Part shown: piece by piece, positions 203-27,070 of the stretch
How the letters are laid out: the number at the start of each line of letters is the position of its first letter
Position numbering within the stretch: the first letter of the stretch is position 1
Assembly (NCBI RefSeq): GCF_048593235.1
Contig: NC_133623.1
Coordinates: 81,175,752-81,239,751 of the forward strand
Origin: Sminthopsis crassicaudata
Taxonomy: Eukaryota
Length of the DNA: 64,000 nucleotides
Direction: 5' to 3'
The notes under the pieces: model-generated
Database searches by the model: none
What the model saw: the letters and a program-made list of their open reading frames with translations, nothing else
Told to the model about the DNA's origin: nothing
Translations under genes and position numbers: made by a program

Positions 203-323
203 CACTTGTGGAACAGAAGAGATGGAGGCAGGATTCCACGTGGTCGATGTGCTTGTCTTCACCTGCCAGTTTGTTCCACCCGTCATTTTCTTTTCAGGAG
301 GCTGATTCCACTGGATGTCAGAT
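203..323 (-). CDS. PICALM-like exon 16
   Basis: [40 protein letters not shown] (cf. DVNWSQPGEKKLTGGSNWQPK); donor GTAATA, alternative in-frame GT 3 nt upstream. Confidence 0.9.
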
Positions 324-479
324 CTAAAATGAGACACATAAGTGAGCCTTTTCACATAGTGGCCCTCATCACAATGAGAAGATGAACTGAGAAGCCAAGC
401 AGTTAGCTATATGAAGCATTTGGGCATGCTAGGCCCTAAGTAAGATGCCACATATAGTTAACAAAGACTATATATGTGT

Positions 480-529
<50 letters not shown>

Positions 530-3500
530 CTCTGTTGAAATTTCTCCTCATCTGTCAGGTCCTTTAAAATCATTTCTCACCTGCTGGCCCAGCTCAGCGC
601 ATCAGAATTTGCTGCTTATTCAGCATGGCACTAGCCTCTGCCTATCGGAATCCTCCTCATCTCCCAAGCCTCAGCTCAGGTATCACTCTCGGCAAGTCTC
701 TCTGATCTACCTTGTTGGACAGTGTTCTGGCCCTTCCCTCAAGGGGTCCTAGAACCCTCAGGCCAGATCTCTCTTTGGCCCCGTCATCCCCCCACCATTT
801 ATTTACTTACCAGTTTGCGTATCCTATATTCCAACCAAAAAAATGGTACTAGTTCCTCAAGGCCAGGGGCTGCTGGATCCTTAACACAGTCCCTTTCCCA
901 GAGTTGGTACTTAAATGCTTGCGTTCTTGAACTGGTCCAGTGTCTCTCTAACCCAGGAGATAGTCTCTGGGAACTGCTCTGCCTATACCTATCACCACTC
1001 ACCCAAAGCCTGCTTCCAAAGAAAGATGTCCTGCCATGACAGCAGCCCCTGAGCTTGCAACCAGGGTACCATCAGCCCCTTCCTTTTTCCAGGGAGAGAA
1101 CCTGCTTCACAACAGCCTCCCAGCAGTCATTTCCACAAATATCGCTAGAGCTAGAACACCTGAGGAGCTATGTGACCTTGACCTGACTCTGAAATATCAT
1201 TTCTTGATAGTTTCATTAAGTGAAGACTCTATGCCATCAGTGGCATCAAATTTTGTGATCTCTATCACTCATTCACAGCCCAAGGTCCCATAATTTGGCC
1301 ACTCTGCTTGATTGAACCCCGGTCCAGCCCAGCCTAGCCAAGGCCTGGGAAGCACCCTCCTCAACCCCCCAGCATCATCTCTGGGACCAAAGTGCTCCTT
1401 GTATTGGGGTTTTACTTAACATCACATGTTTGTGAAGCCCGTGTCAGGTATGCCATACCAGTGTCTAGGTCCCTCGGGAGAGGGGAGACTGTCCCCCTCC
1501 TCCGGGCTAGCTCATTCATGGACTTAGCATGGGAGCATAGGGAGCTCAGAGAGAGGACAATGGGGGAGGGACTGTGTAGGTGGATGATGGAAGGGGGAAA
1601 GCTGGGTTGCCCAAAGCCCATGCGATGATAGGGGCGGTCAGGCTGGGACAAATCACAGACTCCTGGCCAACCGAGCCAAGAATGAGGCTCAAGGGAGTTT
1701 GGCTACAAAATCACAAGAACCCTGCAAGATTATTGTGAAATGATGTTGTTTGGGAGCAATGGTATATAGGATATGGGTAAATGAATGGTGGATAGATTGG
1801 TGGTGACTGGATGGTGGGTGGGTGGGTGATGGTGACTGGATGGTGGGTGGGTGATGGTGACTGGATGGTGGGTGGGTGGGTGGATGGTGAATGGATAGTG
1901 GGTGGGTGGATGGATGGTGGGTGGGTGGATGGTGACTGGATGGGTAGGTGGATGATGGGTGGGTGGGTGGGTGGATGGTGGGTGGATGTTTGGAAAAGCT
2001 TCACTGGAAGAACACTGGTTTGGGAGGTGGCAGCACTGGGTTCAAGTTCCAGCTGGGATCCACCTCTTGGCCTTTATGGGTCTTACATGAAGCCCTCCCC
2101 TATGAGGCCCTTTAAACTGTAGATTGATGGTTATTGGATCATTAAGCGCTCTTCACCTGTGATAAGTTTGAACCTTTCAGATGCCGTCCCACAATCCCAA
2201 CTGCCTACATCACTCCATTTTAACTCCTGGGCAGGCAGCCCTGCTCATGGTAATGTCTTAGAACTAAGCTGAAGACTTTTAATAAGTGATTTTCTGGGAC
2301 TAAACTTGTAACAAGCTTTAAGTTCTTTCATTTGGGCCTCTTCTCCAACACTGGACTAGTAGCAACCCTTTAAAAAAACAACAACAACTTACTTTTTGGG
2401 GCTTGTTCCAAAGTCGAGATCTGTTTTAACAAAACAAAAGAAAATATATCACTTTTCTTTAAAGTGCAAGAAGGTGCCACAATGGGCAGCCACCGAGCAT
2501 TAGGCGTGGAGAAGGAAAACCTGAGTTCAAGTCCAGCCTCAGAAACTTTCTAGCTATGTGACCCTGGCCAAGTCACTTCACTTCTGTCTGCCTCAGTTTC
2601 CTCATCTATAAAAGGAAAATCATAATAGCACCTCCTTCCCTGGGTTGTTGTGAGAACCAAATGAGATTTATAAGTGCTTAAGATAGTGCCTGACGCCTCC
2701 TGGGGGTTATGAAAATAGGTTTAAATTTAAATGGTGAACTGAGCACTTACTTCCCATAAGGTTGGCAAGGGAGGTGTCCAAGTCGTTCCCAAGGATCGAG
2801 CCACTCTGCTGACTGAGGGTAGCCTCCCTCTGTTCTGGAGCAGTTGATGATGACGGGGTGGCAGCACTATCTAAGTCCAGACCTGAAAGCAGACAAGAAT
2901 CAGAAGCAGACCTGGCAGAGTTTGTCTTAAGACAGTGGAGCTGGACTCAGCTCTCTGCTCTGGCTGGGGGAGCCTCATCTTCTTGGCTCGTTGGGGGGCG
3001 GGGTACAGACTTGCCTGGCAGACATGATTTCCAACCCTTTAAAAACAGGTCCATGAACAGCCATTTGTTACTAGTTGGTAAGCCAAAGACTTTCTGGGTT
3101 TCTGTCTTAAGGGTTTTTTTTATTTTTCAAGCTAATATTTTTATAATCCTAAATGGATGATGTCACTTGAGCTTCACAACAACTCTGGGAGGAAGCAGAT
3201 GAGGAAACTGAGGCAAACAGCTGAAGTGACCTGACTAGGGTCCTATAACTAAGCAATATAGAAATCACTCCATGATTGCAAAAGTCTACTACTAATAAAT
3301 AGTCTGGGAGCTGTCTCAAAGCATACTGGGAAGGAATTTAAGGTCCTGAGGTATTTATGTTGGTGTCCATATTTTTCTATGTTTATGAATTATTGGCCCT
3401 AAAGCAGCTCTCCCGACAAGGATTAGATAATTGGCTGCATCCAGACACTAGAGTCTAAATATACCTTGTGAGCAAGCGTCGAGATCATATTCCACCCCCT

Positions 3501-6500: not shown

Positions 6501-9500
6501 CTCTCTTGGGCACTGGGTTTTCCCGGGTAGACTGGAGGCATCATCCTGAAGAGGCTTTGGCTCAAACTCACCTAGCCCAAGGTGACAGGTGTGATCCATT
6601 CAAAGAACGTGCAAGAGAAAACAAAGAAAACCACAAGGTCAACAAAGAATCTTATTTTCAGTCATTATACAGAATGCAGGGAAAACAGTTTTGAATTCAA
6701 TTTCATTTTAGGTTGCAAATTCTTTCCCTTCCACACTCATAGCCATTGGAAAAAAACAAAGTCCAAGCCAAATGGCAGGGGATGGAGGTGAGAGGAAAGG
6801 GGAAGGGAAGGGAAGGAAGGGGAGGGAAAGAAGAAAGAAAAAAAAAAAGAAATGAGGGAAGAGGGGAAAGTGGATTTGCCCTTGAGTCCATCTCCTCTCT
6901 GGTATGGAGGTAGGAGGCATGTTTCATCAGGAGCCCTTTGAAGCTGTGGTGGCTCACTGTGTCGCTCAGAGTCTCTAAGTCCTCCCAAATTGATCAGTTA
7001 CATTATTGTTGTTGGTATACAAATCATTCTCTTGGTTCTGCTTACTTCACTTTGCATCAGTTCATATAAGTCTGCCCAGCTTTCTCCGAAACCATCCCCT
7101 CTATCATTTCTCACAGCACAATACTAATCGGCAAATAAACATTTATTAAGTGCCTTTATTTCTATTTTTAATCATTATTTATTATGCTCCAAGCACTGTA
7201 TTAAAAGCTACTATTCCATAACCTTCATGTATCCTAAGTTGTTCAGCTATTCCCCAGTTCATGGGCATCTTATTTCCCATTCTTTGCCAACACAAAAAGA
7301 GCCACTCTGAGTATTTTTCTACCCACAGTCCTTTTCCTCTTTGATCTCTTCGGGGTACAGCCCCAGTGTTAGTGTTGCTGGGTTGGAGAGTTAGCATTTT
7401 GGGGCATAATTTCAAAATGCTTTACAGAGAGTCTGGACCAGCTCACAGCTCTACCAACAATGCTTTGGTGTACCTGTTTTTCCACAGTCCCTCCAGTATC
7501 TGTCATTAAGACAAAGTCTTATCACTTTCATACTAACTGAGCCCCATGTGAACTAAGCTACTTGTCCCTTGGATTACCACATGCTGTGGCTAAAATCTTG
7601 ACTTCCTGCTTCCTCAAAGCCATGATTTCATGATCCCAAGCACTCCCTCCACTGGTGTAGATTGCTTTTCCTCTACCACTCAGCGGACAGACTGCCACCA
7701 GCCACTGAGACCAAAATTACCCATGGCCTGGTGGCTGAATACCTGATGATGAGCTTCTTGGGACTCGAAGCCGAGCCTCCAAATCTAGATCGCTCTGGAA
7801 AGCTTGCCAATTCAGCAAGGCCTGCCCTGGTTGGCACTCCACTGGCATTGTTCAAGATCTCACTCGCCCCCAGATCATAAAGAACTTTGGGAAGGTCTTA
7901 GAGGAAGCAAATCAAAACCTGTCTCAATGGGCTGGCCCCATGTGTGCTGAAGGCCGCCAGCAGCACCAATAAGGTCAGTCCCTAAGTGATACCGGCACCT
8001 CGGTCACATGTGGGGCCTCCACCACAAACCGTGGGTCGTAAGTACTGAATGTTCTCAGTGTCAGTGTCTGCTAACAATTGTTGATATCAAGTCAGAGACC
8101 TGCCTGGTGGCCAAAGGATAGGGAGAGAACATTCTGGAGATACCAGCAAGAAGATAAGACTGTTACCATCTGCCACTTGACTCTCTAAATCCAGTGATTT
8201 TGTTCCAAACACAGAGTCGAAATCCATAAGAACTTCTGAAGGAGCAGAGACTGGAACAGCTGGCAGAGGGAGCTCTGAGAAGACAGACACATAAAGGCAC
8301 TGTTACAGGGTGATAGTACAAAAATAAGCTCAAAGTTTCCACCAAGAAACAATCCTCAGCAATCATGGGACACACAGCCATGGATACACAATTAGGGATA
8401 TAATAATCTCCACCCAGATGGCAGCCTTTCTTACACAGAATATGATCAAGAAAAGGAAAGGAAGCAAATCAGCTTCCCAATATCCATGCACTTTAGTCCC
8501 AGGCATGTCCCTCACCGGAAACTCATTTACTCTTATTTTACAAACAGTTCTAACAAACTTAGTAATCTGGTTTTCTAATTCCACAGGAGACCCTGAAAGA
8601 CAGTGCTACGTCAAATAATTATTATTTATATCAATGGTCCTCAAGTATCATTCCTTAACAACAAAGGCTAAATTTCACTTTGTATATATTTGATTTCAAA
8701 AGGCCAAAAAAAAAATTACCCTTTTAAAAAAACTAAAAATGAACATTGCCACATAAAGGGCTGAAAAGGGACGATTTCTTAGCATAACGCCAGTTCCTGA
8801 AGATTTAGCCCCAGTGTCTTAGGCTGGAGTACAAACTCACCATTTTCCCAGGTTTGGCTTGGGGACGTCTTCGAAGTAGTGGCAGTGTTCCGTGAGTTGA
8901 AAACAAAAGCAGGCTGAAGATTAAATAGATCTCCAGAAACCTTGGTCAGACTGGGGTGGGGGACAGAAAAAGAGAGGGTGTGAATGACTCCAAACCACCT
9001 GATGTTGGATTAGGTTCATTTTTCATCCAATGTATAGGTTTAGAGGTAGCATATAATACAGAGAAATTCAGCCCTTGAACACATCAAACTGTGTTCTCCT
9101 TATAAATACATCTTTTGGAATTAGTGGACGTTTGACAAGTACAGTTTTATTAAGGATAAGACCAAATTATAAATAAAAGACAACTGAATTTGGTTCCTGT
9201 AACAGGCCAACTGACTTTGAATTGCAATGGATTGTCCATGGCACTCACATTGATAAACCTGTGGCTACTGTAGAAGGCCAGGGACTTAGCAGAAAAGTAT
9301 CCCAGGTGGACTGGCATCATTAACTGGCAGCTTGGTGGGTGGGTAACCATATGGTGCAGTGCATAGAGCAGGAAGAACTGAGTTCAAAAACAGCCTCAGA
9401 TACTCAACACTTATTATGTGATCCTGGGCAAGTCACTTAATCCCAACCGCCTCGGCAAAAATAAAAATAAATTGGTAATAAATTGGCAGCTTATTCCAGC

Positions 9501-12500
9501 TATAGACTTCACAAACGATTACACCAAGAACTTTTCTGTTTTTACAGAAATCTTCATTCACTTATTTTATATCAAATGTAACACCACTTAATCAGGAGGA
9601 TAATCTGTATCAAAAAATGCTTTAAGATTCTGTATTTTTAGAACATCTGTAAAATGGCAAAATTGTACCACATTAAATATTAATTTTTTGCTTGCTCTCA
9701 GAACAGCTGTTTTTAGTTTAAATGAAGTCCCAATTAACAATTTGAAGAATTTCAGGGAGGATGTGGTCACATTAAAGTTAACAGAATTAAAATACCCTAT
9801 TAGTATCAATTGGAAATTTCTTTTGTTTTTGGAAGTATCAAGAGCTTTTTAAGTATAGAATTTAAAATGCCAAGTGCCATTTCTTATTGACATTATATTT
9901 TACATTTACATGCAAGTGCATTTTGTAAGTTTTCTGTAAGTATAAAGTAGTATTTTCCACTGGAAAGTACTGACTTGGGCCTAAGGCTTAGGCTTTTCCT
10001 GGTTCCCATGATGATGGCTATACTGCTACACTACATTGTTGTACTTTGCTTTGTATCATAAGGCCACGAATTTCCATGTTGTTTGTAAATATAATAATTG
10101 AAAAGCAATAACAATTTTATTGAAAAAAAAAGTGGCTCCACATTTTTAAATATGATCAAACCTTGTTTCAAAATGTACCAAAGTTTCCCAGAGGCTGGCC
10201 TGTAAAAGGGCCCTGGGTTTGACCGGAGGGTTGTAGGTCTGCTGACCCCTGGATTTTATAAGAATGCAATTAATTATTGGGAATATTTCTGCTCTCTGGT
10301 TAAGTAAGGTTCTTCCACGCCATCTCCATGCACTTATGATTATCCTTGATGCCAATTGTCCTTTTTCTTTCTTTTTTTTTTGGGGGGGGGGGTAGTACTG
10401 ACCCTGTCATTTTCTAATATGAAAACTTCCTCTTAAAATCTCAATTGGTGCCAGTTCTGCCACTCATGCTCTAAGAATTGACTGGGTATGGGTCACCCAG
10501 AAAGGCTGGACCTGAAGCCATTGGACCGGGAGCTTCTGGAGAAAAGGGCTGACTTTTTATGGCTTAGTGCTGGGCTGGGCACACAGGAAGTGCTTAAACA
10601 ATGCTAGTTGACTGCCCCAGGTATTCCTGACTCAGAAGCTGGTCTTCTACCTCTTACGGCTCCCTGGCTGTCCCCAGATCCATGGTCGAACTATCGGATG
10701 GATATGAGCGTGGACTGTTGAGCTGCTGAAGTGGAAGTGTGAGGACAGCAAGACGGGCAACGTCTCTCCTGTCCACACTGAAGCCAGCACTTGGCCAACA
10801 GACCCACAGAATAAAATAATGAAAAGGCAATTAGGAAAGGGTGAGCCAGCAAAGACTCCAGCGGGCTGCTCTTTCAGAAACTTAGATGCATGAGTGAAAA
10901 GGAGAAATAAAAGAGGCTTTGAGTTTGACAGATTACTGTGGCAGATGGGGCTAGAGGGGCAACCTCGTCAGGGCCAGAGGAAGGAGTGGTTAAAATTCAG
11001 ACACCTGTGCACTGTGCAGAGCACCACTGGGAGAAAACGCCAAGCTTGTCTCACCTGGCGGATGGAGGCAAGATGGGGGCAAACGTATCAGCAGAGGGAG
11101 AAGCAGCGGTGTTTTTCCCGATCATCCCGGGAGACTCAGATGCAGATGCAGATGCAGAATTAGTCACGGATGGAATTTCTTTTAAACATCTTTCCTAAAA
11201 GAAAATGACAGATTGTCCAGCTGAACCTAAAGGGACCAAGATGGGACGCAGGCCTGCAATGGCTGCAGCAAATCTTGAGTTTGAAGAAGAGACGCTGTAC
11301 TTTCACAAGATCCACAGAAATTCATTTAGAATATTCCATTTTTTAAAAGGGTTTTCAAAAAGATCAAATAGGCAAGTTATAATTTCTCACAATTTTGGTT
11401 TCTTTATATGAAAATGGGGGTAATAATGTCATTGGTAGCTTAGAAAATCTATAGCTATATAGATAGATGAAGCTAGACAGAGCTACAAATATGTATATGC
11501 AGATATACAATCTTTCCATATTTCAAGTTGCACTGCTAACTCGAGAACAAAGATGTAATTTTACCTTTGTGGATTTCAGCTTCCTCATGTGTAAAACTGA
11601 AATAAACAATTTTATTTCCTCTCAGTGGTTGTGAAAAATGCAAGCTTTTACATGGGAAGTGATTCTTCTACCACACATTATATGTGCGCCGTTGGACAAA
11701 ACACTGCTTCCTGACTGAAATTTTTCTTCTATAAAATTAGGCCTGGCTAACGTGATTCAGGCCAATTCCAATAGACCTGGGCATCCACAGAGAGGACCAT
11801 GAGACTCGATGTGGATCATAACGTAGTATTTCTATCTTCATGATTATTGTTTGCTTGCTTGTTTTTTCTTCCTTCTCTCTTTCTGGTCTGAGTTTTCTTG
11901 GGTAGCATGATAAATGTGGAAATACGTTTAGGAGAATTGGCCATGTTTAACCTATACTGGATTGCTTGCTGTCTAGGGGAGGGAGAAAAATTTGGAACAC
12001 AAGGTCTTGCAAGGGTCAATGCTGCAAACTATGTTTGCTTATATTTTTTAAAACATAAAAAGTTATTATAAAAAAGTGTTTTCAGTACCAGACTTGATGT
12101 CACCATTAAGCAGCTAACTCCCGGCAGCCCCTTAAGGTTTTGCTGCAAAGTTCACCTCTTCCATCTTGGAAGAATTCTTTGCTGAGAATTCCGTAGCCGC
12201 CGTCCCACCTCCCCACCCCCCCCTTCCTGGCCATCCCTGCTCACACTTGCTCACAAGTATACTGGCCGAGGGGGAACGACCACCTCAGTGCTCCCCCGTG
12301 GCGAGAGACTGGCAGCAGAGCTAGCACTCCCACGGCTTTCCAGGCCACTTCGCTTACTGTTGCACTGAAAGCTGCCCACTGCTCTCTGTACTTTGAATTA
12401 CTGTTCTTATATTGTTTCCCAATTGGTTAACGTGGGGAATACAATGAATGGGTTCTTCCCACAGCTCACCCTCTGTACATCAGGAGGATACAAAGAAAGA

Positions 12501-15500: not shown

Positions 15501-18500
15501 TGATTTTTCTCTCCCAACATGATTCACAAAGCAGTGTGTATTTAAAAATAAACTTAATACAATAAAAAACCCCACTATTAAGTGTGTGTGCGTGTGCGTG
15601 TGTGTGTGTAGTGAGGGGGGGAATGTCTGAGGCCAAATTTGAATTCAGGGCTTCCTAGTCTAGGTCTGGCACTCTGGATCCTGTAGTGCCTGCTGAAGTA
15701 CTGCCCCTCTGAATGCTAGCTAACCAAAAAGCAGCTTTAGCAGCATAAGAATGAGGAAGTCTTCTGACCCCGGCAGCTGGGGGGCAACATCTGAATGTCC
15801 TGGGCAATGCTATCCCATGTTCCCGTGGCCAGGCTGATGGCAAGTTACGGCATCAGAGGGACTTTCACATACCATACACAGGAAATTCCACATACCAAGG
15901 AGAGACTGAAAACAGGTGGTGTTCTCTCTCTCTCTCTCTCACACGCACACACACACACACGCACGCACGCACACACACACATATATAAGAAGCCACTCAC
16001 CTCCTAACTTTGGTCCTTAAGAAATCACTGGAAGCCATCTCATCCCATCCCATGCTGCTCTGCTCCTGCCCCGCCTTCATCCCTCCCCCACCCTACATGC
16101 CACTTTTCCAGCACACAAATGGAATTGATCATTCGGGGACAGTGATACGGACACAAGTCTACAGAAGCAAATGGATCCTCCAAATGGAAGTGATGAGATG
16201 GAGTGATCTATGAAGGGTAGCTGGGGGTAAACCGGCCAAAGCAAGCCCAAGAGGACACTGACCTGAGTAAGATCAGGAATATCAGCCTGGTCAATTCCAA
16301 CTTGCTGAGAGACAGAAAAAAAAGCAGTTAAGACAATCAGCATCGAAGTCCACAGACTGTCCTCCTCGTCTCTGCCCTTTCACCCCCTCCCTGTATCCAG
16401 CCCTCCCTAAGCAACCAAGAGAGGATTTCGAATGCACAGGGTTGCCACTCCTCTGCTCAAGCAGCCCCCATGCTTTCTCACTGGCTGCTGTTAAAATAGA
16501 ATCTCTTTTGTTTGGGTTTCTGAGCCCCTCCAACCTGGCTCTAGCCTCTCTCTCAGGATACTCTAAGAGGTAGCATCATTTGACCAAAGATAGTCAGCCA
16601 GTGTGTGTGAGGAGCAGGGCTGGAACCCCTCAGCTTTGCAGGCCAAGTCAGCCAAGCAGGCCTGCTTGTTGCCCCCAAAAGGATCGTATTATCTGCTCTC
16701 TTGTACTCCTCCTCGGTGCTTTCCCCCTCAGAGGTACAGGCCGTCACCCTTACTCTTTGACTCTGCCCTTTGCAGCTCCCTCCGAGAGTCCTTTCCTGTC
16801 TCCCCAGCCACCATGCATTTTGTAAGAACTCTGGGTAGACTGTGAGCTCTTGTATTTGTGTTCTAGGTTCTAGCACAGCCCTTAAGTCATATTTGGTGAC
16901 TGACTGAAGGGACAGAAGTCACCTCAGACCCCTAGCAATGGTTGTTTCTTTATATTCCGCTAAAAATGCTAAGAAAATTCTTCATTTCTGGCCTGAAATA
17001 ACTACACATGGCTAGAATTCACATATGCATTTCAGTCAAACCCCAGAAGGCTCGGCTCCCGCAGGGAACATGAGAATGAAGCTTATGGAGCAGGAGAGAA
17101 TCTTACCGCTTTTCTGCAACCACAGGATACCGTTCTGATTAGGGAAAAGCCCCTCCGGACCCCATGGATGCAGCACAAAACTATCCCATGTGACCTCTGA
17201 CCTGCTGACCCTCAATACAAGTTGTCTGATCTGTATGAGGACAGTCACCATGCTTTCTTTCTTTTTTTGCTCTTTGTAACTAGGGATGACTCTCTGGGTT
17301 GGGCAGGGGAAGGACCAGATTGGGAAGTGAAGGGGAGGTAAAAAGCCAAGAGTAAGAACGTTTTTCTAAAAGAAAGTAATTCAACAACTAACTAGGGAGA
17401 TATAATACCAACCATGACACCTAGATTGCAAAGCAGAGAAAATCTCATTCTCTCCCCACAACCACTCCAGGGGAGGCAGGCACTATGAAAGCTATTCCTC
17501 CCATTCTAGAGACAAAGTAACTGAGGCTAGAGAGGGAAGGACTTAGTCGGTAAGAGGCAGGGCAGGATTTGAATCCAACTCTGGCCAACACAGGGCTCGG
17601 CACTTTGAGCGGGGCAGCCAGCCGTGGGAACAGGCACAGGGAGAATGGTGACTGGCTCCCACCATGTTACCTCGGCAACTTTCAGGAACTCAGATAATTT
17701 GGCCATTCTTGCCAGGAACTTCTTGTAACTCTCTAGCCCTTCTTTGCATTGGTTCTTCTTCATGTCAAAGTACTTTTCTAAAATAAAGACAAAGATTTCA
17801 AACACCTGGGAAGACCTCAAATGAGTTCCAAGGGGGCTGCTGGTGAGAGGGGCTGCGTGGAAGTGTTTTTCCCTTGCAATGATCATTTTTAAGGGAAGAG
17901 GAGCAAGGAAACCACCCATCCCTGCCCTGCTGTCATCCATGCTCTACCCTGGACATAAGTTTATGGGAGCAAATGGATTTTCTTTTCTTTTTTAGTTTTT
18001 TTTTTATAGCTTTTTATATACAAAACATATGCATGGGTAATTTTTCAGCATTGACCCTTGCAAAAGCTTCTGTTCCGAATTTTCCCCTCCTTCCCCCCAC
18101 CCCCTCCCCTAGCTGGCAGGTAGTCCCATTCATGTTAAATATGTTAAGGTATATCTTAGATACAATATATGTATACATATTTATAGTTATTTAAGCAAAT
18201 GGGTTTTCAAAAAGAAATATCCCCAAGTAGGCCAGTGGCCAAGAAAAGAAGGGCAGATTTATATTCTTTTGAACCCAAATGCTTGCAGGTCTAGTACAGT
18301 GTAGACTGTATCAGAGGCCTGAGTTGACATTAACTTAGCCAGTGGGCATTGGGGACAAGGCTGGAAGCCATTTCTTCCAGCCTCCAAATCTGGTCCTCCA
18401 GCCATTCTGTCTCTCTTCTCTACAAATAAAAACTGGCTCGCACGGCCAAGAGTAAATCCAGAGCATCCCACCCCAGAACTGAAATGCTTGGCCATCTCAG

Positions 18501-21500
18501 GGAGAAAAGCAACTTCTTGGGGTCCCTGAGAAAAAAAGCAAACCATTTCAGCAGTGTGCTGTCACCTGAATGTGATGTCAGAAGCCAGTCTTAAGGCCTT
18601 GCTACAGAGCTCTGGAGAATGGGCATGAGGGGGTCAATGGGACCAAAGAAGCGACGCCTCAGGATTTGGCAAGGGCCATGTTTGTCTATAAGCAATGGCC
18701 TTGGCAGCCACCAGAAAGCTTGGCTTACGCCAAGGAAAAGGGAATGGCTCTCAACAAAGGGGATCCAATGGGAGCTCAAATGAATTCAGAAAGCAAACTG
18801 CCTCCCTCTCTTCTCCCTCCCTCCATGACCTGAGGAAAGTAGCAACATACCAAGCAGGTTAATAATCCCTTCATTGTAGGCTGCAAACAGCCTAATGGAA
18901 TCCTTAAATAGGTGCATGAAGGCCGAACTGATGACACCATTTGTGAGTTCATTGGGATGCGCCTGTGGAGGACAAGAGAATCCATGAGGAGGCAGGGACC
19001 AAACCTCCCGTCATCTTCATCGAAGCAAACAAATAGAAAGATGGCCTGGAAAATGGTCCCGTGGGATCATCTGCCTCGGGTAGGTAAGGAATTCTTAAGC
19101 CACCAAGAGACACAGGCAATTATCAAAGGTAACACGGCAGCTCTTAATTATGTGACATAAAACTTCTGGACAAACAAGCAGGCTGAGGAGAGAAGGAGTA
19201 AATAAGGAGAAAAAAGGTTCTATTGAATTGCTCAGAGGAGGGTTTGGTATCCAAGATATAAAGACAAGAGAAATACCCCAAACAAAAGTTGTGCTCCACT
19301 ACATCAAAGACGAGGAACAAACAGCTGCCAAGAGCAGAATTGTAAACTATTTACAGCCATCTGAAAGGACGGCCCACATTGCTAATACCAAAAGAAAGAA
19401 ATCCCAACCACTCCACGGTTGCCAACTGGCCCACATGACAAAGGACGGGCAGGAGAGACAGGTCCTCCAGTGTGGTGGTGGCCGAGCTGTGAATCGGTAC
19501 AATCATTCAGGAAAGCGACTGGGAATTGGGCAAATTAGAGGCAAAAACATCTCCTCTGTGACCCAGAGTCCATTACCGGGCTCAGATGAGGCCACCGAGA
19601 AAAAACAAGACCTCCTTTACACCCACTAAATTGGGGCAGTCCTTTTGTGGTAGCAAAAAACTGAAGACAAGGCCAGTACCCAGCAATGGCTCAACATGAT
19701 GTGGTCCATGAAATGCAATAGGAGACTACTGGGCAGTAAGAAATGATGCGTGGGATGACTCCGAAGAAGGCTAGAAAGACCTAGGGGAATCGATGCAAAG
19801 GGAAGTCCACAGAGTCAAGGACGACACTCTATACGGTGACTACAACTACGGAAGTAGAAACTACACTTGGCACACAAACCAGAGAACAATCACACATGAA
19901 TTTTGGGAAACTGCCTTAAAGAAGATGCCCCCTCCACAGTCCAGATGGGGGACTGGGCCCATTTTGCCCAATTCTGTTCACTGTGACTTTTTTCTTCTTT
20001 TTCTTTAAAAAACAAAAAAGGTTTGGATTTTTGGGATGGCTCAGGGGGAAGAGTAGGGGCAGAGGGGGAAACTGAGGAAAGGTGAAAACAGAGCAATTCA
20101 AATGTATTTTTAAAAAGAAAATTCTTACATCAAAATCAAGCAGAACATCCAGCTGGTTCTGAATAACTGGGAGGGTTTTCAGGAGCTTGTCAGTACCCAT
20201 GGTCCTCATGACTCCATCAGGCCTGGAAAGACAAATCACAGGTGTATGAGCAGCTAATATGGATATGTGCTAGCATGCACACACACACGCATGGCATATG
20301 TGAACACACACAATACACACTTAAGTATGCGCTTGCGTTGTGAGTGCTCGTGAGCGAATTACAAATGTCTACTCACTACGTCAAAGGGTGGACATTTCAC
20401 TGATGTATGACCTCTCCCCTACACAGGCTGCAAGGTCTATGCGGTTCGGCAGATGCCACAGGAGCCGCCTGACTGTGGTAAATGACATGACGTCTGCCAC
20501 AGGACTGGGCCAAAGCCATCACCCTGCAGTCCAGGTGGTGAGGAGCCTCCACAAACTGAGCAGAACCAGACCTCTGGTGGGGTACCAGGCCAGTACTCGT
20601 CAGCAGGAAGGCTCTGCCCTCCAGGGGTGAGGGCAGCCAGCCTGAAGCCAGAGGTCCCTTCATGCCATGAGGGGGGGTCTGGACCTTTGGAAGAACCACC
20701 AGGGGACACAAATGCGTCCCTCTGGGGTAAGGGCAGCCAACCTGAAAACAGGAGTCCCTGCATGCCATGCTGAGGGGCCGCAATCTGTAGCAAAACCATT
20801 AGGGCACAAACACGGCCCCTCTGGGGTGAGGACGGCTGCTTTGAAGCCAGAGATCCCTGCACGTCACGCCAAAGGGCCCAGATTTTAGCAGAGCTACCAG
20901 GAAACACAATTGTAACTCCCTGGGATGAGGGTGGCCACCCTAAAGTCAAAGATTCTTGCATGTCGTGCCAAAGGGCCCAGATTTTAGCAGAGCTACAAAG
21001 GAACATGCATATGACTCTCCAGGGTAAGGACAGCCACCTTAAAGCCCCAGGTCCCTGCATGACAGGCAGAGGGTCCTGATGGCTCTGGCCCCCCAAGAGA
21101 ACACATATGGCCCCCAGAGGTGAAAGTGGCTATCCTATATTCAGGGGCCCCTACATGCCAGGCAGAGGGCCCTAGTGGTTCCGCCCCCCTGAGGTGAGGC
21201 TAAGCCTACAGGGAACACATATGACCCCCTGAGGTGACGGTGGCCATGCTACAGCCGGGGATCCCTGCGTGCCACGCCTAGGGGCTGGACTTTTAGCAGT
21301 GCCACCAGAGCACACACAAGGCTCTCTCCAGATGGAGTCTCTCCTGTGGAACAGACAACAGGAAGACTCCCAGAAACCAGAATGACAGAGGGAAATCCGT
21401 GCATCCAGGTGGCAACCGCTCCGTTCGGAAAAACTGCAATTCAGCAAGAACCTTCCACAGAACTGCATCTTCTTTTGACAACCTGAAAACGCTTACTAAC

Positions 21501-24500
21501 CCTCTCTTCATTTTGGTGAAGTCAACTGCTACCAGTCTGTAGGAAAGCGCTTTTTCATTCAAGTATCTGCTATATCGCCTGATGAAGGTAGACATATCGT
21601 AACCTAAAAATGAAGACATCTGGGTTATTTCCAATTGCTCACATTTATTCTACATACTAAAGACAAGGTCTCTCCAAGACTGTGTCCCATGTCACAGCCT
21701 GAGGTCCCCCGCTCCTCAAGGAATGCCCTGCTGATCAAGAAGGGCTGGGTGCCTTCAATGCCATCTCTTTCAGCATCTTGGTCGCTTTTTCATTAAGAAA
21801 GAACCACGTTTGAAGCTCTACACAGCCTTGAGAGCCTTCTGAGGTTAAGGGAGCTGGGAGGCAGTGATAGCCATGGAGTCATGAACTGGGTCAAAGGTTA
21901 TGTGGGCCTAGAGAAAGCCCGGTCAACTTGGAATAGGTAGAGCACGCAGGCTGATAGCTGAGCTAAGTCTTAGCGAACTAGCAAGTGATTAGGCCGGGTG
22001 AGAGACTCCTGATTTGCCTGCTTGTTTTACAGAGAAGGGAACTGTTGCGGCCCTGTGGCTGAGCTGCCATGAGGCCTTAGCCTTCCTGGGGAGCCCAGGT
22101 CATTTCTCCGTATTCCACTGGCGGATCTCATCTCTTAGCTGGATTTGCCATCTAGGGGAGGGGATGGGGGGAAAGAGAGGGACACTTGGAACAGAAGGTC
22201 TTGCAAAATTACCCATGCATATGTTTTCTAAATAAGAAGCTATAATAATAAAACAAAGAAAAGAAAAAGCTATTATTTAGCTAATATTTAGCTGTTTTTT
22301 TAAAAAAATTAATTATATATTACATATATAATATACAATAATTTAACCTTTTAAAACTGTTTAAAGACTACTAAAGTATATGATATATATAATATTTTAT
22401 ATGCACATGATAATTTAATAATTATTTAAAATATTTAGCTACTTTTTTTAAAGAAAGAAAAACAAGCTTCAGACACCAGACTTGAGGGTTGCAGGCCCAC
22501 ACGCCTGTGGATGTGCGCTCTGCAAAAAGCTGCCTCACGTGGGACAGGTGCTCAGCACAGGGCTGCTAAAGGCACGAATGGCCACCGTCTGGGCCCTTGC
22601 AAGCAATCTCCTGCCAGTATCTTCTGTGTGGGGCTTCCCTCGGGCTGGGAGGAGTCAAGGTCTCAATATCATTTTTGGCTGTTACTGTTTTTAACCAAAA
22701 CTCCTCTAGTCTCTAATCTCCAAGAGGGGAAAAGTTCTTATCAATCAGAGGCCTTATTTAAAAAGCTCATTAGTCAGGGAATCCCAGAATGAGTTGGAAA
22801 GGACTTTGTCCACATTATACCATCCCTTCTCCAACATGGCTGTGCAGTGGTAGGCCAGCCTGTGCTGGCAGCCCTTCTGTGGGAGGGGAGGGTTCCCCAT
22901 CTCCCTTGGTGGCCCAGCCCTTCCTCTTCCAGGCGGCCTCCCCTCCCATCCAGTTACTCGTCCTCCCTGTGTCCTCAGCCACGTGCTAGTCCTTCAGATA
23001 CCACGATACCATATCCCGTCTCCCGCCCCCCCCCCCCGTCCCAGCCCACAAATTGTCATCTTTAAAGCTGAACCTTCTTTCCCCATTTGGGGAATGTAAG
23101 CATCCAAGATCAGCAGCCCACCCCTCCCCGCTCTCTCACTCTGCTGGGCCAGACTTTGCCTCGACTGTCTGTCTCTCATCCCCACGAGAGCGTCGGTCTT
23201 ACCCTGTATGACGCTTTTATCCAGGAAGTTGCTTAAATTGAACAGACTGTTTCTCGATGCAAGGTACTGCATGAAACGCTGTGGGTCAAAAGGTCAGGAA
23301 GGTTAGGTTTTGTTTCTTGCAAACAGAATGGATTTAGGATAGAGTCTTTGGAGATGCCAAGGTGTCCCCCCCCCCAACTCTTCCTTCAATCTGGTTCAAG
23401 AAAGAACCAATCCACAGGCCCAGATATTCCGCAACTTCCCCTTGGATGCTGGGCAGTGGCCGTGGGCCCTGAGGCTGCCCCAACTCTCCCTCCAGGCTGT
23501 CCCCTGGCCTGCCCACTCACTCATTCTGTTCCTGTAAATTTGGGGAGAAGAAAAAGGTCTGCTCATGTCAGATGGAAAATCACAGGAGGAAGAGGAGGAG
23601 CTCCAACTGTAACCAGTGAAAACTCTAGCCAGATCTGAGTCAGGAGGCAGAAGGAGGAGAAAAAGGAGAAGGGAGAGCAATCCTGGCCTGTGCTATGGAC
23701 AGCCGGAGGTAGGGAAAGCGACTCGTTCCACCTGAGGCGCACCATACGTTACAGCTGGCTGAGAGAGCTGAATTTCCAAACAATTCCAGCACATCCTCCC
23801 TGAAGGACAGAGGGCTCCCCTGGGAGTCGGGAGGATCTGCTTTTGGCACCCGGGAGAAGCCTCTTCCTTCCTGGGAACCCTCAGGCCAGCTTCTCAGCCC
23901 CCAGATTCCGAGCTCGGCCTGACCGGGATTAGGAGAAGTTTCTTCGCTGGAGTTCTCAAACTCAAGGAGAGCGCCAGTCTGGCACCCTCCCTTGCCTCCC
24001 CACCTCAGCGACCGGTGGGACCCATGCTGCCCAAAGGGCCCGGAGCGGCCACCTACCTACCTACCTACCTAGCGCTCCCAGAGACCCCCTCCTGAGAGTC
24101 ACAGCAGGGGGCCGTGGGCTGGTGCCCCCAGGATGAGTTCCAGACGGAACCCTGGGGAGGGGGGACAGCAGTCTGCCTCTTACCTCATTGCCGTACATCA
24201 TGAGATGGTGGGTTGTGATCAGAGCCTTGAAAACAACTATCCAGCTGCTGTTGACGGTGCGTTCCAGAAGTGTGTCGGCCAGCTGCGGTATGCTCATGTT
24301 CAGCTCGTTAGTGCAATGGATCAGGTCTAAGTTCAAAAGAAGCCACGGGACAGATCAAGTCTCAGGCCCAGAGCCAAAGGGACTGTCTTAACCAAATCCT
24401 ATGGAGCCAATCCTTAAAGCCGAGGGTGCCGGTTCCATGTTGTCCCCCCCAGAGAGTCCCCGCCCCGTCCCAAACGGGGTCACCTGTACTCTGCACCCAC

Positions 24501-26295
24501 CCATCGCATCCCATGGCCCCCTGGCTCTCACTGCCCGCCCCCAGCCCAGGCCTGCTATCTCTGAGTGGGCCCGGAAGCGCTCCCGGGAAGCAGTGACGGG
24601 GAGAAGGAGGTGCCATATACCACCCCGGAGCCCCAGAGCACCCCAAAGGACTCATGGGTCAAGGGCGACTCAGAGGAATGGGGCCCTCACTGCGAGTCGG
24701 GCTGGGTCTCACAGCCTCAGAACCTCCAAGTCTGGGAGTCCCAGGATAGGCCGGCTTAGCAAACCCACTACAAGAACTCAAATCCAGCCTCCCCACCCAG
24801 GGGCTCGGACCCAAGCGCCTTTTAAGTCACTGAGGCAAAAGGTCCCCGCTATATTTTGGCACAGAGTGTCTACCTCCTGATGCCTGGGGGGAGGGGAGGG
24901 GGCCAGGGCTGCTTTCAGAAGCACAGAGAACACTTAGTTTGGCTAAGAGTCCAGAGCCTGGAAGTTCATTGTTGGAGGTCCGGCGCCACCCCACCCCCAA
25001 TCCAGGCCACAGCAGCTAGTCCCAAGCTGAGGGCCCCGGGTGGAAGGAGGGGCCGCTGGGATCAAGAAGTCTGGGGAGAGCTTGGAAGCGTGCAAGGAGC
25101 AATGTCACCTGAAAACGTGGACAGCCCTGACTCGGGCCCATGACTAGCTCCTCTGCCCCCCTCCCCCCCATGGAGAGAGGGAAATCTGGCCCGGGAAGCT
25201 CAACTTGCTCCCTCAGGCCGTACTTCCCGGTGGGACAATGGGCTGGGGGCGGGGCACGAGCGGAGAGTTTCCCAGGTCAATTCCCCAACACTAAACTCAT
25301 GTGGATTTCATTGACTCACTCATTCTCTACTCAGAAATCTCCTGAAGAGGCAGCAGGACCCGGGGGAGGAAACTCCCCCTCCCCAAGACTGGGGTCAAGC
25401 TGGCCTCCCACTCTAGCTAGAGGCCGCTGGTAAAATGGGGGGGCTGGACCCCCACGACCCCTAAGGTAGTTCTCCCCTTAATAGCCCACGGCTGCTAGTT
25501 AGGATTAGTCTGAGAGCACAAGGGAAAACACTGACTAAAAAAAGTCGAGGGGGGGGGGGGGGTCTGCCAGCCACTCCCAAGGAAGCTTGCCAAGACTTCA
25601 GGGCATGGAAGGTGGGGCTGGCAGGGGCCGCGGGGCATCGTTCGTGCCAAAGAGGAGACACTTAAGCCCAGGGCGGGAGAGGGGCTCGGCCAAGGTCACC
25701 GGGGGCCAAGCTATCGAGGCTCACTGGGGAGGAGCTAGGGTGGCACCTCGAGGTCTCTCCGTGCGCCCATCCCTGGACCTCAGTTTCCTCCTGTGTCACC
25801 TAAGTGGGGAGGGGGGCCTAGCTCGTGCCCAGCTCGGTCCACGGGCGCCAGCTGCCCAGCCCACCGAACATTCAAACAAGTGGCGCACTGGTCCGGTGGG
25901 GCTTGGCCAGCTCTGCCCGCGAACGGGGCACCTCGCGCCCGGCTGAGCGCAGCGGCCCGAACCCGGCCCGCGCACCCAGCCCGCAGCCCGGCTGCTCCCA
26001 CGATGCTGCTGGCACAGGCGAGGCCGGCCCTGGGGGGGCGAGAGCCGCTCCCGGCACCTCGGAACGGCGCCCGAGGGGGGTCGCGGCGGGAGGTGGGGCG
26101 AGTGGGGGATGGGGGTGCGGGGCGGGAGGAGGGGCTGCGGGAGAGGGGGAGGGGACCCTACTCACAGTCCAGGTGTTTCTGCTTGGGCCCCATCATTTCG
26201 TGGGTGCTCGCCTTGCAGACGGCTTTGGCCACGGCCGACCCCGTGACGCTGTGCTGCGCGGCCGTGATCCGGTCGGTGAAAGACTGGCCCGACAT
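203..26295 (-). CDS. PICALM-like (CALM/AP180-family ANTH clathrin adaptor) gene, 16 coding exons in window, 3' end beyond the left edge
   Basis: Exons in transcription order: 26166-26295, 24184-24326, 23203-23278, 21501-21603, 20129-20222, 18851-18962, 17671-17777, 16263-16304, 14105-14190, 12812-12935, 11055-11194, 8841-8950, 8167-8274, 2751-2882, 2393-2420, 203-323. All are GT-AG and phase-consistent; 1656 nt with no stop. Begins [44 protein letters not shown]. Exon sizes 130/143/76/103/94/112/107/42/86/124 match PICALM as recalled. Confidence 0.93.
482..527. repeat. (CA)n microsatellite
   Basis: About 23 perfect CA units. Confidence 0.98.
1785..1990. repeat. (GGAT/GGGT)n degenerate microsatellite with a repeated TGGTGACTGGATGGTGGGTGGG unit
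   Basis: Direct inspection. Confidence 0.95.
2393..2420 (-). CDS. PICALM-like exon 15 (28 nt)
   Basis: [10 protein letters not shown]; AAACAG/GTAAGT; phase 1 to 2 bridges exons 14 and 16. Confidence 0.85.
2480..2700 (+). mobile_element. MIR/CORE-SINE
   Basis: CTGAGTTCAAGTCCAGCCTC...GCCTCAGTTTCCTCATCTATAAAA...GTTGTGAGA. Similar MIR fragments at about 3160-3260, 11540-11650, 14490-14640, 17470-17600, 27195-27330, 29510-29780, 31420-31570, 33060-33150, 42480-42650, 44520-44650, 58230-58380, 58720-58920, 62085-62240. Confidence 0.7.
2751..2882 (-). CDS. PICALM-like exon 14
   Basis: [44 protein letters not shown] (cf. DDLDSSLANLVG); 132 nt; donor GTAAGT. Confidence 0.9.
3760..4200 (+). mobile_element. 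L2 3' fragment
   Basis: GCTGCCAAAGTGATGTTCTT...TAAAGCCCTTCACAATCTAGCC. Similar L2 pieces at about 5960-6090, 16560-16910, 36400-37300, 37930-38260, 45560-46075, 58380-58640. Confidence 0.6.
4786..4980. mobile_element. Probable hAT MITE
   Basis: CAGCTTCTTAAACTAGGGGTCACAACCCC ... AAGTTCAAAAGTCCATG, degenerate TIR-like ends. Confidence 0.5.
5208..5353 (+). mobile_element. Young tRNA-derived CORE-SINE (marsupial WSINE1-like) with 14-bp TSD
   Basis: GGGGCAGCTAGGTGGCGCAGTGGATAGAGCACC head, B-box GAGTTCAAATC, A-rich tail; TSD AAAAAATCAGAAGG at 5193-5206 and 5354-5367. Confidence 0.88.
6880..7510 (-). mobile_element. L1 ORF2-end/3'UTR fragment
   Basis: Antisense L1 motifs (CTGCTTACTTCACTTTGCATCAGTTCATATAAGTC; ATTCCCCAGTTCATGGGCA). 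Confidence 0.7.
8167..8274 (-). CDS. PICALM-like exon 13
   Basis: [36 protein letters not shown] (cf. VDFESVFGNKS); 108 nt. Confidence 0.87.
8841..8950 (-). CDS. PICALM-like exon 12
   Basis: [36 protein letters not shown] (cf. PICALM SKLPNDLLDLQQPTF...TWG); donor GTGAGT. Confidence 0.85.
9340..9472 (+). mobile_element. CORE-SINE copy
   Basis: GAGTTCAAAAACAGCCTCAGA...GGGCAAGTCACTTAATCCC. Confidence 0.7.
11055..11194 (-). CDS. PICALM-like exon 11
   Basis: [46 protein letters not shown]; TTTTAG/GTGAGA; phase fits neighbours. Confidence 0.82.
11830..12075 (+). mobile_element. L1 3' end
   Basis: GGAGAAAAATTTGGAACACAAGGTCTTGCAAGGGTCAATGCTGCAAACTAT. Confidence 0.75.
12812..12935 (-). CDS. PICALM-like exon 10
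   Basis: [41 protein letters not shown]; 124 nt. Confidence 0.9.
13497..13744. other. Assembly gap (248 N) in PICALM-like intron 9
   Basis: Run of N. Exon 9 to 10 phase is consistent, so no constitutive exon need be hidden in it. Confidence 0.99.
14105..14190 (-). CDS. PICALM-like exon 9
   Basis: [28 protein letters not shown]; 86 nt; donor GTAAGT. Confidence 0.92.
14650..15545 (+). mobile_element. Two adjacent L1 3' fragments (ORF2 C-terminus [16 protein letters not shown]...[12 protein letters not shown])
   Basis: Recognisable L1 ORF2 C-terminal peptide and 3'UTR. Confidence 0.8.
15921..15981. repeat. Compound (TC)n(AC)n microsatellite
   Basis: Direct inspection. Confidence 0.9.
16263..16304 (-). 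CDS. PICALM-like exon 8
   Basis: [14 protein letters not shown]; 42 nt. Confidence 0.93.
17671..17777 (-). CDS. PICALM-like exon 7
   Basis: [36 protein letters not shown]; 107 nt. Confidence 0.95.
17975..18190 (-). mobile_element. L1 3' end, antisense
   Basis: Poly-T then AAAACATATGCATGGGTAATTTTTCAGCATTGACCCTTGCAAAA. Confidence 0.8.
18851..18962 (-). CDS. PICALM-like exon 6
   Basis: [37 protein letters not shown]; 112 nt. Confidence 0.95.
18990..20110 (+). mobile_element. Degenerate L1 ORF2/3'UTR remnant
   Basis: Decayed motifs such as IKDEEQ, HYTP..A, CGGGR..RYNH..GK..G. Confidence 0.6.
20129..20222 (-). CDS. PICALM-like exon 5
   Basis: [31 protein letters not shown]; 94 nt. Confidence 0.95.
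20610..21330. repeat. Degenerate tandem array, about 7 units of about 99 bp
   Basis: Identical 30-mer GCCAAAGGGCCCAGATTTTAGCAGAGCTAC at 20868 and 20967; recurring CCCTCTGGGGT(A/G)AGG and TCCCTGCATG motifs. Confidence 0.85.
21501..21603 (-). CDS. PICALM-like exon 4
   Basis: [35 protein letters not shown]; 103 nt; donor GTTAGT. Confidence 0.93.
23203..23278 (-). CDS. PICALM-like exon 3
   Basis: [25 protein letters not shown]; 76 nt; AG/GTAAG. Confidence 0.95.
24184..24326 (-). CDS. PICALM-like exon 2
   Basis: (Y)[47 protein letters not shown]; AG/GTAAG; 143 nt. Confidence 0.95.
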
Positions 26296-27070
26296 GGTGC
26301 CTTGCTGCCCGGCGCCCGCCCGGGGTGTCCCCCGCTGGGCGGCGGGCCGGGGCCGGGGTTGGGGGCGGGACCAGGGGCGGAGCCGGGAACCAAGGCCGGG
26401 GGCGGGGCCGGGAAGCCGCCGCTGCCGTCGCTGCCACTGCCCGCCAGGCCCCGCCCCCTCTCGCCACTGGCCCCTGCCGGACGCTCGCGCGGACGGACAG
26501 ATGGACTGATGGTCTGCCGGATGGTCTCGCGCCCGGGAGCCGCCTGGGGGCCGATCGATCGCCCGGCTGGTTAGAGCGCGCCCACCTCCCTAAGATGGCG
26601 ACCACCGCCTCCGCCGAGCAGCTGGCTGCGCGTCCTGGAACGCCGGGGGCCGCCGTTGGGGGCCGTCGAGGCGCGGCCGCTGGTTGGTCGAGGGCCTCAA
26701 GCGGTCCCAGGAGCCCGAACGCGCCTCGACGGCCCTCAACGTTCGGAGCGAGGCGGGGAGGGGGTGTGTGTGCGGGGGGACGCGCTGCCGCTCTTAAAGG
26801 GTTAGCGATCCCGAGGGGTGGGGCGCAGGGGGCGGGCCCGGCCGAGAAGGGAAGGCCGTTTTGAGGAGCACTTTCTCGGGGCCGACCCCTCCGCCTGCCG
26901 GGCCCGGCCCGCAGTGTGGCTCAGTTTCCGAGGTGGAATTGCAGACCCTGACGTGAAGAAGCGGCTGGCGCGCTCCCAGCCTTTTCCGCCGCTGGAACTG
27001 GGGGTGGGGGCAGGGGGGCGGAATATTGCCGCTCCTGCCAGACACGCGTGGGTTACTTTTGCCCAAGTGC
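25780..27070. promoter_or_regulatory. CpG island / promoter of the PICALM-like gene
   Basis: Very GC- and CpG-rich, many GGGCGG boxes, YY1-type AAGATGGCG at 26592-26600; overlaps exon 1. Confidence 0.85.
26166..26295 (-). CDS. PICALM-like exon 1 (start codon)
   Basis: [43 protein letters not shown]; donor GTGAGT; 130 nt. Confidence 0.95.

Follow-up and report, generated by a model that had tools for sequence, protein, structure and literature searches.

A 64,000-nucleotide (nt) stretch of the Sminthopsis crassicaudata genome (NC_133623.1; hereafter the window) carries, beside BRCC3, a gene for a protein of the CALM/AP180 type, and the locus raises the question of which member of this family the gene represents and whether that member is still functional. 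We refer to it as L3, a working name for the third CALM/AP180-family (PICALM/SNAP91) gene, and we rebuilt it independently from the list of open reading frames and the raw sequence. Among the known members, PICALM is a major risk gene for Alzheimer's disease and a fusion gene in leukaemia, and AP180 serves as a core adaptor of synaptic vesicles; surveys of evolution and textbooks alike credit vertebrates with no more than these two. The evidence presented here indicates that L3 is very probably a functional, transcribed third vertebrate member of the family, produced by a duplication that preceded the separation of ray-finned fish and tetrapods, and orthologous to the 'PICALM-like' gene found upstream of VBP1 in birds and turtles.

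Family membership and orthology

The L3 protein is a member of the CALM/AP180 family of ANTH-domain clathrin assembly adaptors. Exons 2, 4 and 7 each pass the Pfam ANTH cut-off alone, exon 2 matches the CALM ANTH structures 3zyl and 1hf8 (E 5e-22), and solved CALM ANTH domains outscore Drosophila LAP as structural matches of the L3 exons. Considering that family scans cannot separate paralogues, relatives were found by exhaustive search with exon 2, whose best long matches were a flycatcher protein (Ficedula P0042), a thrush protein and a medaka protein. Three word searches, each giving its best 120 matches, then covered sauropsid L3, sauropsid PICALM and teleost picalmb. The search with Ficedula P0042 recovered at least 120 sauropsid proteins (birds, tuatara, green turtle, alligator), and that with a rattlesnake PICALM recovered true PICALM in species that also bear L3, on different and much larger chromosomes (PICALM versus L3, for example: Chelonia, 348 versus 23 Mb; Eudromia, 190 versus 20 Mb; Anser, 213 versus 22 Mb). 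The search with P0066 returned teleost picalmb, including that of medaka, and Oryzias possesses both L3 and picalmb. Neither mammalian L3 nor mammalian PICALM nor further SNAP91 proteins appeared among the best 120 matches of each word search.

The position of the window protein was determined in a tree of 36 ANTH domains (294 columns), built without mammalian PICALM and with AP180 from two species only, for which invertebrate homologues of the LAP/UNC-11 type served as outgroup. The protein falls with 13 L3 sequences, eight from sauropsids and five from ray-finned fish, in a clade with a support of 100/99. PICALM together with picalmb is recovered at 93/90 and is the sister clade, and AP180/SNAP91 is recovered at 100/100. 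Constraining the window protein to group with PICALM costs 23.6 log-likelihood units and is rejected by the approximately unbiased (AU) test (p 0.022), as is its placement with SNAP91/AP180 (AU p 0.003), which leaves L3 outside both orthology groups. Judged by its sequence, L3 is a separate third paralogue, neither PICALM nor SNAP91. The presence of both sauropsid and ray-finned-fish members in its clade implies that this paralogue is older than the split between ray-finned fish and tetrapods. The tree and the AU tests are in agreement with an earlier note on this DNA, made from the sequence alone, which had argued against PICALM or SNAP91 orthology and proposed an old vertebrate paralogue. 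The same note had called the gene uncharacterised, a description that holds in part: orthologues are already annotated in many birds, reptiles and fish, where the databases name them 'PICALM-like' or, wrongly, 'prefoldin subunit 3 isoform', but we found no paper recognising a third group and no named third CALM/AP180 paralogue in the literature. In a survey of how endocytic genes evolved, the CALM/AP180 pair is all that is listed for vertebrates (PMC4824007).

Among the closest known systems, PICALM/CALM has in common with L3 an ANTH domain followed by a disordered tail, a conserved N-terminal helix, the lipid-binding motif Kx9KxKH, the VAMP-binding residues L219, F240, M244 and L251, and the C-terminal blocks DLDSSLANL and W..P.EKK.TGG.NW, with an ANTH identity of 82%. 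It differs in its separate orthology group, in its tail (identity ~38%) and in its location, on other chromosomes in sauropsids, whereas window L3 adjoins BRCC3. SNAP91/AP180, a member of the same family, shares with L3 residues that are common to AP180 and not to CALM (AVA[KR]AVCKA, ADTL, VFKAL), but it forms its own clade (100/100) and carries a long Ala/Pro/Thr-rich neuronal tail that is missing from L3. The 'PICALM-like' proteins of birds, tuatara, turtles, crocodilians and ray-finned fish (for example Ficedula P0042, Sphenodon P0240, Chelonia P0249 and Oryzias P0032) belong to one clade with window L3 and share its colinear exons and tail blocks; the sauropsid proteins are almost frozen, whereas in window L3 one exon is missing, as are two D[LI]F motifs. 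The single-copy LAP/UNC-11 homologues of invertebrates have the same ANTH fold and adaptor architecture, but they predate the vertebrate duplications and their ANTH identity is 59-66%.

Teleost 'picalmb' groups with tetrapod PICALM, and the teleost L3 genes bear generic names only. If L3 corresponds to zebrafish picalma, the a/b names would mask an ancient paralogy and not a teleost duplication.

Gene structure and transcripts

The L3 model comprises 16 exons on the minus strand (203-26295), with 1656 nt in 552 stop-free codons (Table 1). All internal acceptors are AG behind a pyrimidine tract and all donors are GT, giving 30 intact splice signals. The earlier note had counted 16 GT-AG exons and 552 open codons, which our independent rebuild reproduces exactly, and every ANTH substitution that it listed is present in our model. 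The stop codon is not reached within the window, and comparison with the orthologues places ~50 C-terminal residues beyond position 1. Exon 1 shows a 91% match to the bird orthologue (Ficedula P0042). The reading frame is kept across the joint of exons 9 and 10 (AG + A = Arg), which flank the assembly gap, and the bird orthologue has a colinear sequence (...KTKEVSAAS-R-ASALSSAV...) encoded by two exons in direct succession; no coding sequence therefore need be hidden by the gap. The ATG is located inside one of the two CpG islands of the window, consistent with the claim that the gene has a CpG-island promoter of its own.

The L3 gene is expressed, because spliced contigs match exons 4-8 and skip the introns. 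Ten sequencing runs contain ~5% of the sequence words drawn from 16250-26249, close to the share that exons make up there, and four of these public runs were compared with 16050-22000; they came from four studies, of which three dealt with organism A and one with organism B. Each of the four runs yielded a single spliced contig, 3.0-3.2 kb long. The contigs cover 21500-21604, 20128-20221, 18851-18961, 17671-17777 and 16262-16304, that is, L3 exons 4-8, with 0 mismatches; the introns between these exons are uncovered, and the four joints are all GT..AG on the minus strand. At their loose ends the contigs run into the last part of exon 3 on one side and the first part of exon 9 on the other. The contigs carry ~2160 nt 3' of exon 8 and, to judge from their lengths, would reach ~209 nt 5' of the ATG. 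The RNA nature of the runs, at the outset only a guess, is supported by these contigs, since they are intron-free in assemblies from which these introns are missing, which is hardly explicable otherwise. The earlier note had asked for spliced transcripts as a check, and they are seen here in four runs.

The same contigs settle the end of exon 4. A candidate donor, TTA|gtaagc, is out of frame with exon 5 and was ruled out by the RNA contigs, which show the true junction to be AGA GG|gttagt, leading to KMKRG|PDGVM in frame and with no insertion. Run X14, labelled organism B, contains the same spliced transcript with 0 mismatches over 459 exonic bases (16262-21604), a match that points to a very closely related organism or else to a difference in labels.

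Two further stretches of note lie within the L3 introns. A repeated element in intron 6 (17841-18238), with similar pieces near 11898-12071, 14823-14954 and 22014-22235, has copies that possess a common translated block (GEG..G.KFGT..LA.VNA...). The summed contig depth over the intron 6 copy is very high in all four runs (158-716), which indicates an abundant transcribed interspersed repeat. In intron 15, positions 1711-2073 form a low-complexity, Pro/Thr/His-rich tandem stretch (PPTHPPTIH...) that is open in several frames on both strands and shows no sign of coding.

Table 1. Coordinates of L3, its promoter region and neighbouring features in the window, with the evidence for each.
Feature	Position	Strand	Evidence or remark
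CpG island with L3 promoter and 5' untranslated region	26001..27000	.	GC 0.74, CpG observed/expected 0.87
L3 exon 1, coding part	26166..26295	-	ATG at 26295; ends KQKHLD + 1 base; donor gtgagt
L3 exon 2 (LIHCTNE...YGNE)	24184..24326	-	Pfam ANTH E 5e-9; CALM ANTH structures E 5e-22; splice sites read
L3 exon 3 (...KSVIQ)	23203..23278	-	model; its end read in loose RNA contig end at 21604
L3 exon 4 (...KMKRG)	21501..21603	-	spliced contigs, 4 runs, 0 mismatches; joint to exon 5 GT..AG
L3 exon 5 (...LLDFD)	20129..20222	-	spliced contigs
L3 exon 6 (...GIINLL)	18851..18962	-	spliced contigs
L3 exon 7 (helices 9-10, SNARE groove)	17671..17777	-	spliced contigs; Pfam ANTH
L3 exon 8	16263..16304	-	spliced contigs; loose end runs on into exon 9 sequence
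L3 exon 9 (ends AG)	14105..14190	-	model, bird orthologue alignment
Assembly gap, 248 N, in L3 intron 9	13497..13744	.	sole N run of the window; unfilled
L3 exon 10 (...VQCLK)	12812..12935	-	model, bird orthologue alignment
L3 exon 11 (...ILPPSA)	11055..11194	-	tblastn with orthologues P0042, P0240, P0261; splice sites
L3 exon 12 (...SQTWEN; sole kept DLF motif)	8841..8950	-	tblastn with orthologues; splice sites
L3 exon 13	8167..8274	-	tblastn with orthologues; splice sites
L3 exon 14	2751..2882	-	tblastn with orthologues; splice sites
L3 exon 15, 28-nt microexon	2393..2420	-	predicted; only in-frame AG...GT candidate like orthologue NLGFGGTPSKK
L3 exon 16	203..323	-	65-71% identity to sauropsid orthologues; donor gtaata predicted; gene runs past window
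BRCC3 (BRCC36) gene	30263-55831	-	same strand as L3, upstream of L3

Predicted function, constraint and competing explanations

The motif for binding phosphatidylinositol 4,5-bisphosphate (PtdIns(4,5)P2), Kx9Kx(K/R)(H/Y), which was reportedly defined by Ford et al. in 2001, is kept in window L3 as K28, K38, K40 and H41, and the change of K39 to Q falls at its 'x' position. Mutation of five CALM residues (L219, F240, M244, I247 and L251) abolishes VAMP8 binding (Miller 2011, PMC3267021); L219, F240, M244 and L251 of this SNARE groove are kept in window L3, the change I247L is common to all L3 proteins, and I236S is a lineage-specific change near the groove. The tail is rich in Ser, Thr, Pro and Ala and keeps a DLF at residue 393, has DTF at a place where the orthologues have DLF, and shows no DPF or NPF in the part seen; the NPF of the orthologues sits in the C-terminal part that lies beyond the window.

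As these conserved residues suggest, the L3 protein would act as a cargo-selective clathrin-coat assembly adaptor. Its ANTH domain would bind plasma-membrane PtdIns(4,5)P2 through K28, K38, K40 and H41, the groove between helices 9 and 10 would capture small R-SNAREs of the VAMP2/3/8 type, and the disordered Ser/Thr/Pro-rich tail would provide the link to clathrin and AP2. The role it most likely plays is thus predicted to be that of a PtdIns(4,5)P2-dependent, R-SNARE-sorting clathrin adaptor with an altered affinity for the coat. The fast evolution of window L3 and the loss of two of three D[LI]F motifs make a shift in the strength of its coat binding, or in its tissue role, probable.

The rate of change was assessed against the sauropsid orthologues. 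The ANTH domain of the window protein is 88.1% identical to that of sauropsid L3, as against 98.5% among sauropsids themselves, and the corresponding values for the tail are 52-54% and 86-90%. At sites invariant in six sauropsids the ANTH domain displays 28 changes, 89% of them conservative. Comparison with the thrush coding sequence gave a ratio of nonsynonymous to synonymous substitution rates (dN/dS) of ~0.04 for the ANTH domain and ~0.13 for the alignable tail, with synonymous sites saturated; the earlier note had proposed this check as well. The open frame and the intact splice sites agree with purifying selection that is still acting, at a weaker level than in sauropsids.

Several observations weigh against a fully functional orthologue. 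The terminal branch of window L3 measures 0.13 (0-0.01 for sauropsid L3), and 10 of the 28 ANTH changes, among them K39Q, next to the lipid-binding motif, and the helix 10 change I236S, occur at sites invariant in 16 other vertebrate family members. Of the three D[LI]F motifs, a single one is kept in the tail of the modelled isoform, and a bird exon of ~49 residues that carries DIF is missing from window L3. The window ends before the C-terminal NPF region, the stop codon and the 3' end of the gene are reached, and exons 1-3 and 9-16 draw their support from homology and splice signals. A single species of this lineage was compared, and a recent loss of constraint may have occurred.

These points would be accommodated by a transcribed but decaying L3; on this view the constraint on the gene loosened in the therian stem, the gene disappeared altogether from eutherians, and the copy seen here is still open but eroding in function. 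In favour of such decay stand an ANTH change more than ten times that of the sauropsid orthologues, a tail identity of 52-54% where sauropsids show 86-90% among themselves, and the loss of D[LI]F motifs and of one exon, with the C-terminus out of sight beyond the window. We hold this explanation to be quite unlikely, given that none of the 552 codons or 30 splice signals is disrupted, that dN/dS is 0.04-0.13 with mostly conservative changes and the key lipid and SNARE residues kept, and that spliced mRNA was assembled in four studies. A minor but real possibility is that, after the relaxation in the therian stem, window L3 was not lost and took on a new role; a fast-evolving adaptor, which would have given up most of its clathrin/AP2 motifs and yet still bind PtdIns(4,5)P2 and R-SNAREs, would then work as a lipid or SNARE regulator outside the canonical coat, and it may be tissue-restricted or co-transcribed with VBP1.

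Two further explanations concern the origin of the gene and the nature of its product. A relocated PICALM orthologue, or a recent, fast-diverging and lineage-specific PICALM duplicate, might be suspected from the sister position of the PICALM clade, from the solved CALM structures being the best matches in the PDB, and from a long branch that could mislead the tree. Such an origin is highly improbable in view of the support for the L3 grouping and the cost of the PICALM constraint given above, the L3-specific residues and tail blocks of the window protein, and the location of sauropsid L3 in a VBP1/RAB39B block that adjoins BRCC3 in human. It is also unlikely, by our estimate, that L3 is expressed chiefly as a read-through transcript conjoined with VBP1 and not as a stand-alone adaptor with its own 3' untranslated region. 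Many bird and turtle models do fuse ANTH and Prefoldin domains (770-850 residues) or carry the name 'prefoldin subunit 3 isoform', and the ~2160 nt found 3' of exon 8 would fit either an untranslated region of its own of ~1.2 kb or VBP1 exons followed by their untranslated region; but most sauropsid models end in ...NPFAPVS.TQIQFM, like PICALM, and the fused models may be annotation merges, a matter on which the window bears no evidence.

Taken as a functional third paralogue, L3 is an ancient and well-conserved gene, present in this mammal-like genome as well as in fish, reptiles and birds. Eutherians appear to be without it, which is in keeping with the published human gene order (PMC8229372) and with a literature that gives vertebrates a CALM/AP180 pair (PMC4824007). 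Considering this distribution, knock-out and redundancy results from mouse and human cells may not hold for zebrafish, chicken or marsupial models, in which L3 could compensate. The gene also offers a natural experiment, with a near-frozen sequence in sauropsids, rapid change here and a probable loss in eutherians.

Genomic neighbourhood and annotation in other vertebrates

BRCC3 lies upstream of L3 on the same strand, as the earlier note had placed it, with the start of L3 ~4 kb downstream of the BRCC3 stop codon. The second CpG island (55-57 kb) holds its exon 1, near 55.8 kb. The exon with the JAMM motif (GWYHSHPHITVWPSHV) lies near 42.2 kb, a further one near 35.1 kb has a match to BRCC36 structures in the PDB (E 2e-16), and the last exon ends in ...EELDSLD and the stop codon near 30.26 kb.

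The other side of the locus is seen in Turdus and Chelonia, where the L3 exons are followed by VBP1 exons on the same strand, merged as one gene model, and then, on the opposite strand, by a gene for a Ras-family (RAB39B-like) protein of 213-218 residues, an arrangement like that of human RAB39B. BRCC3 was not found within 10 kb upstream of L3 in these two genomes; the BRCC3 side is thus seen in the window, with VBP1 lying outside it, and the VBP1 side in Turdus and Chelonia, with neither end seen in both kinds of genome. The human gene order is FUNDC2, MTCP1, BRCC3, VBP1, RAB39B, CLIC2 (PMC8229372). The BRCC3-L3 arrangement of the window and the L3-VBP1-RAB39B arrangement of sauropsids fit an ancestral order BRCC3-L3-VBP1-RAB39B; a comparison of BRCC3-VBP1 synteny had been suggested by the earlier note.

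Public gene models in Turdus rufiventris (L001 10001-50623) and Chelonia mydas (L002 10001-93330) combine ANTH and Prefoldin domains in 770-850 residues, and many RefSeq bird entries call the PICALM-like protein 'prefoldin subunit 3 isoform X'. The fused L3/VBP1 models are due to the merging of annotations on a wide scale, or else to genuine read-through, with splicing into VBP1 exon 2. Where they are merges, the recognition of L3 exposes a widespread annotation error, by which L3 is joined to VBP1 and named 'prefoldin subunit 3'.

In fish, the neighbourhoods of L3 are rearranged and provide weak hints only. Turbot L3 (L003 1314-5082) has a Rab32/38-like GTPase gene upstream, and the Tetraodon gene is flanked by genes for a CAT-type amino-acid permease and an SH2-domain protein (L004 1-1114, 29156-29588). 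The families of these neighbours have relatives in the vicinity of PICALM (RAB38) or on the human X chromosome (SLC7A3, SH2D1A), which would fit a shared paralogy block.

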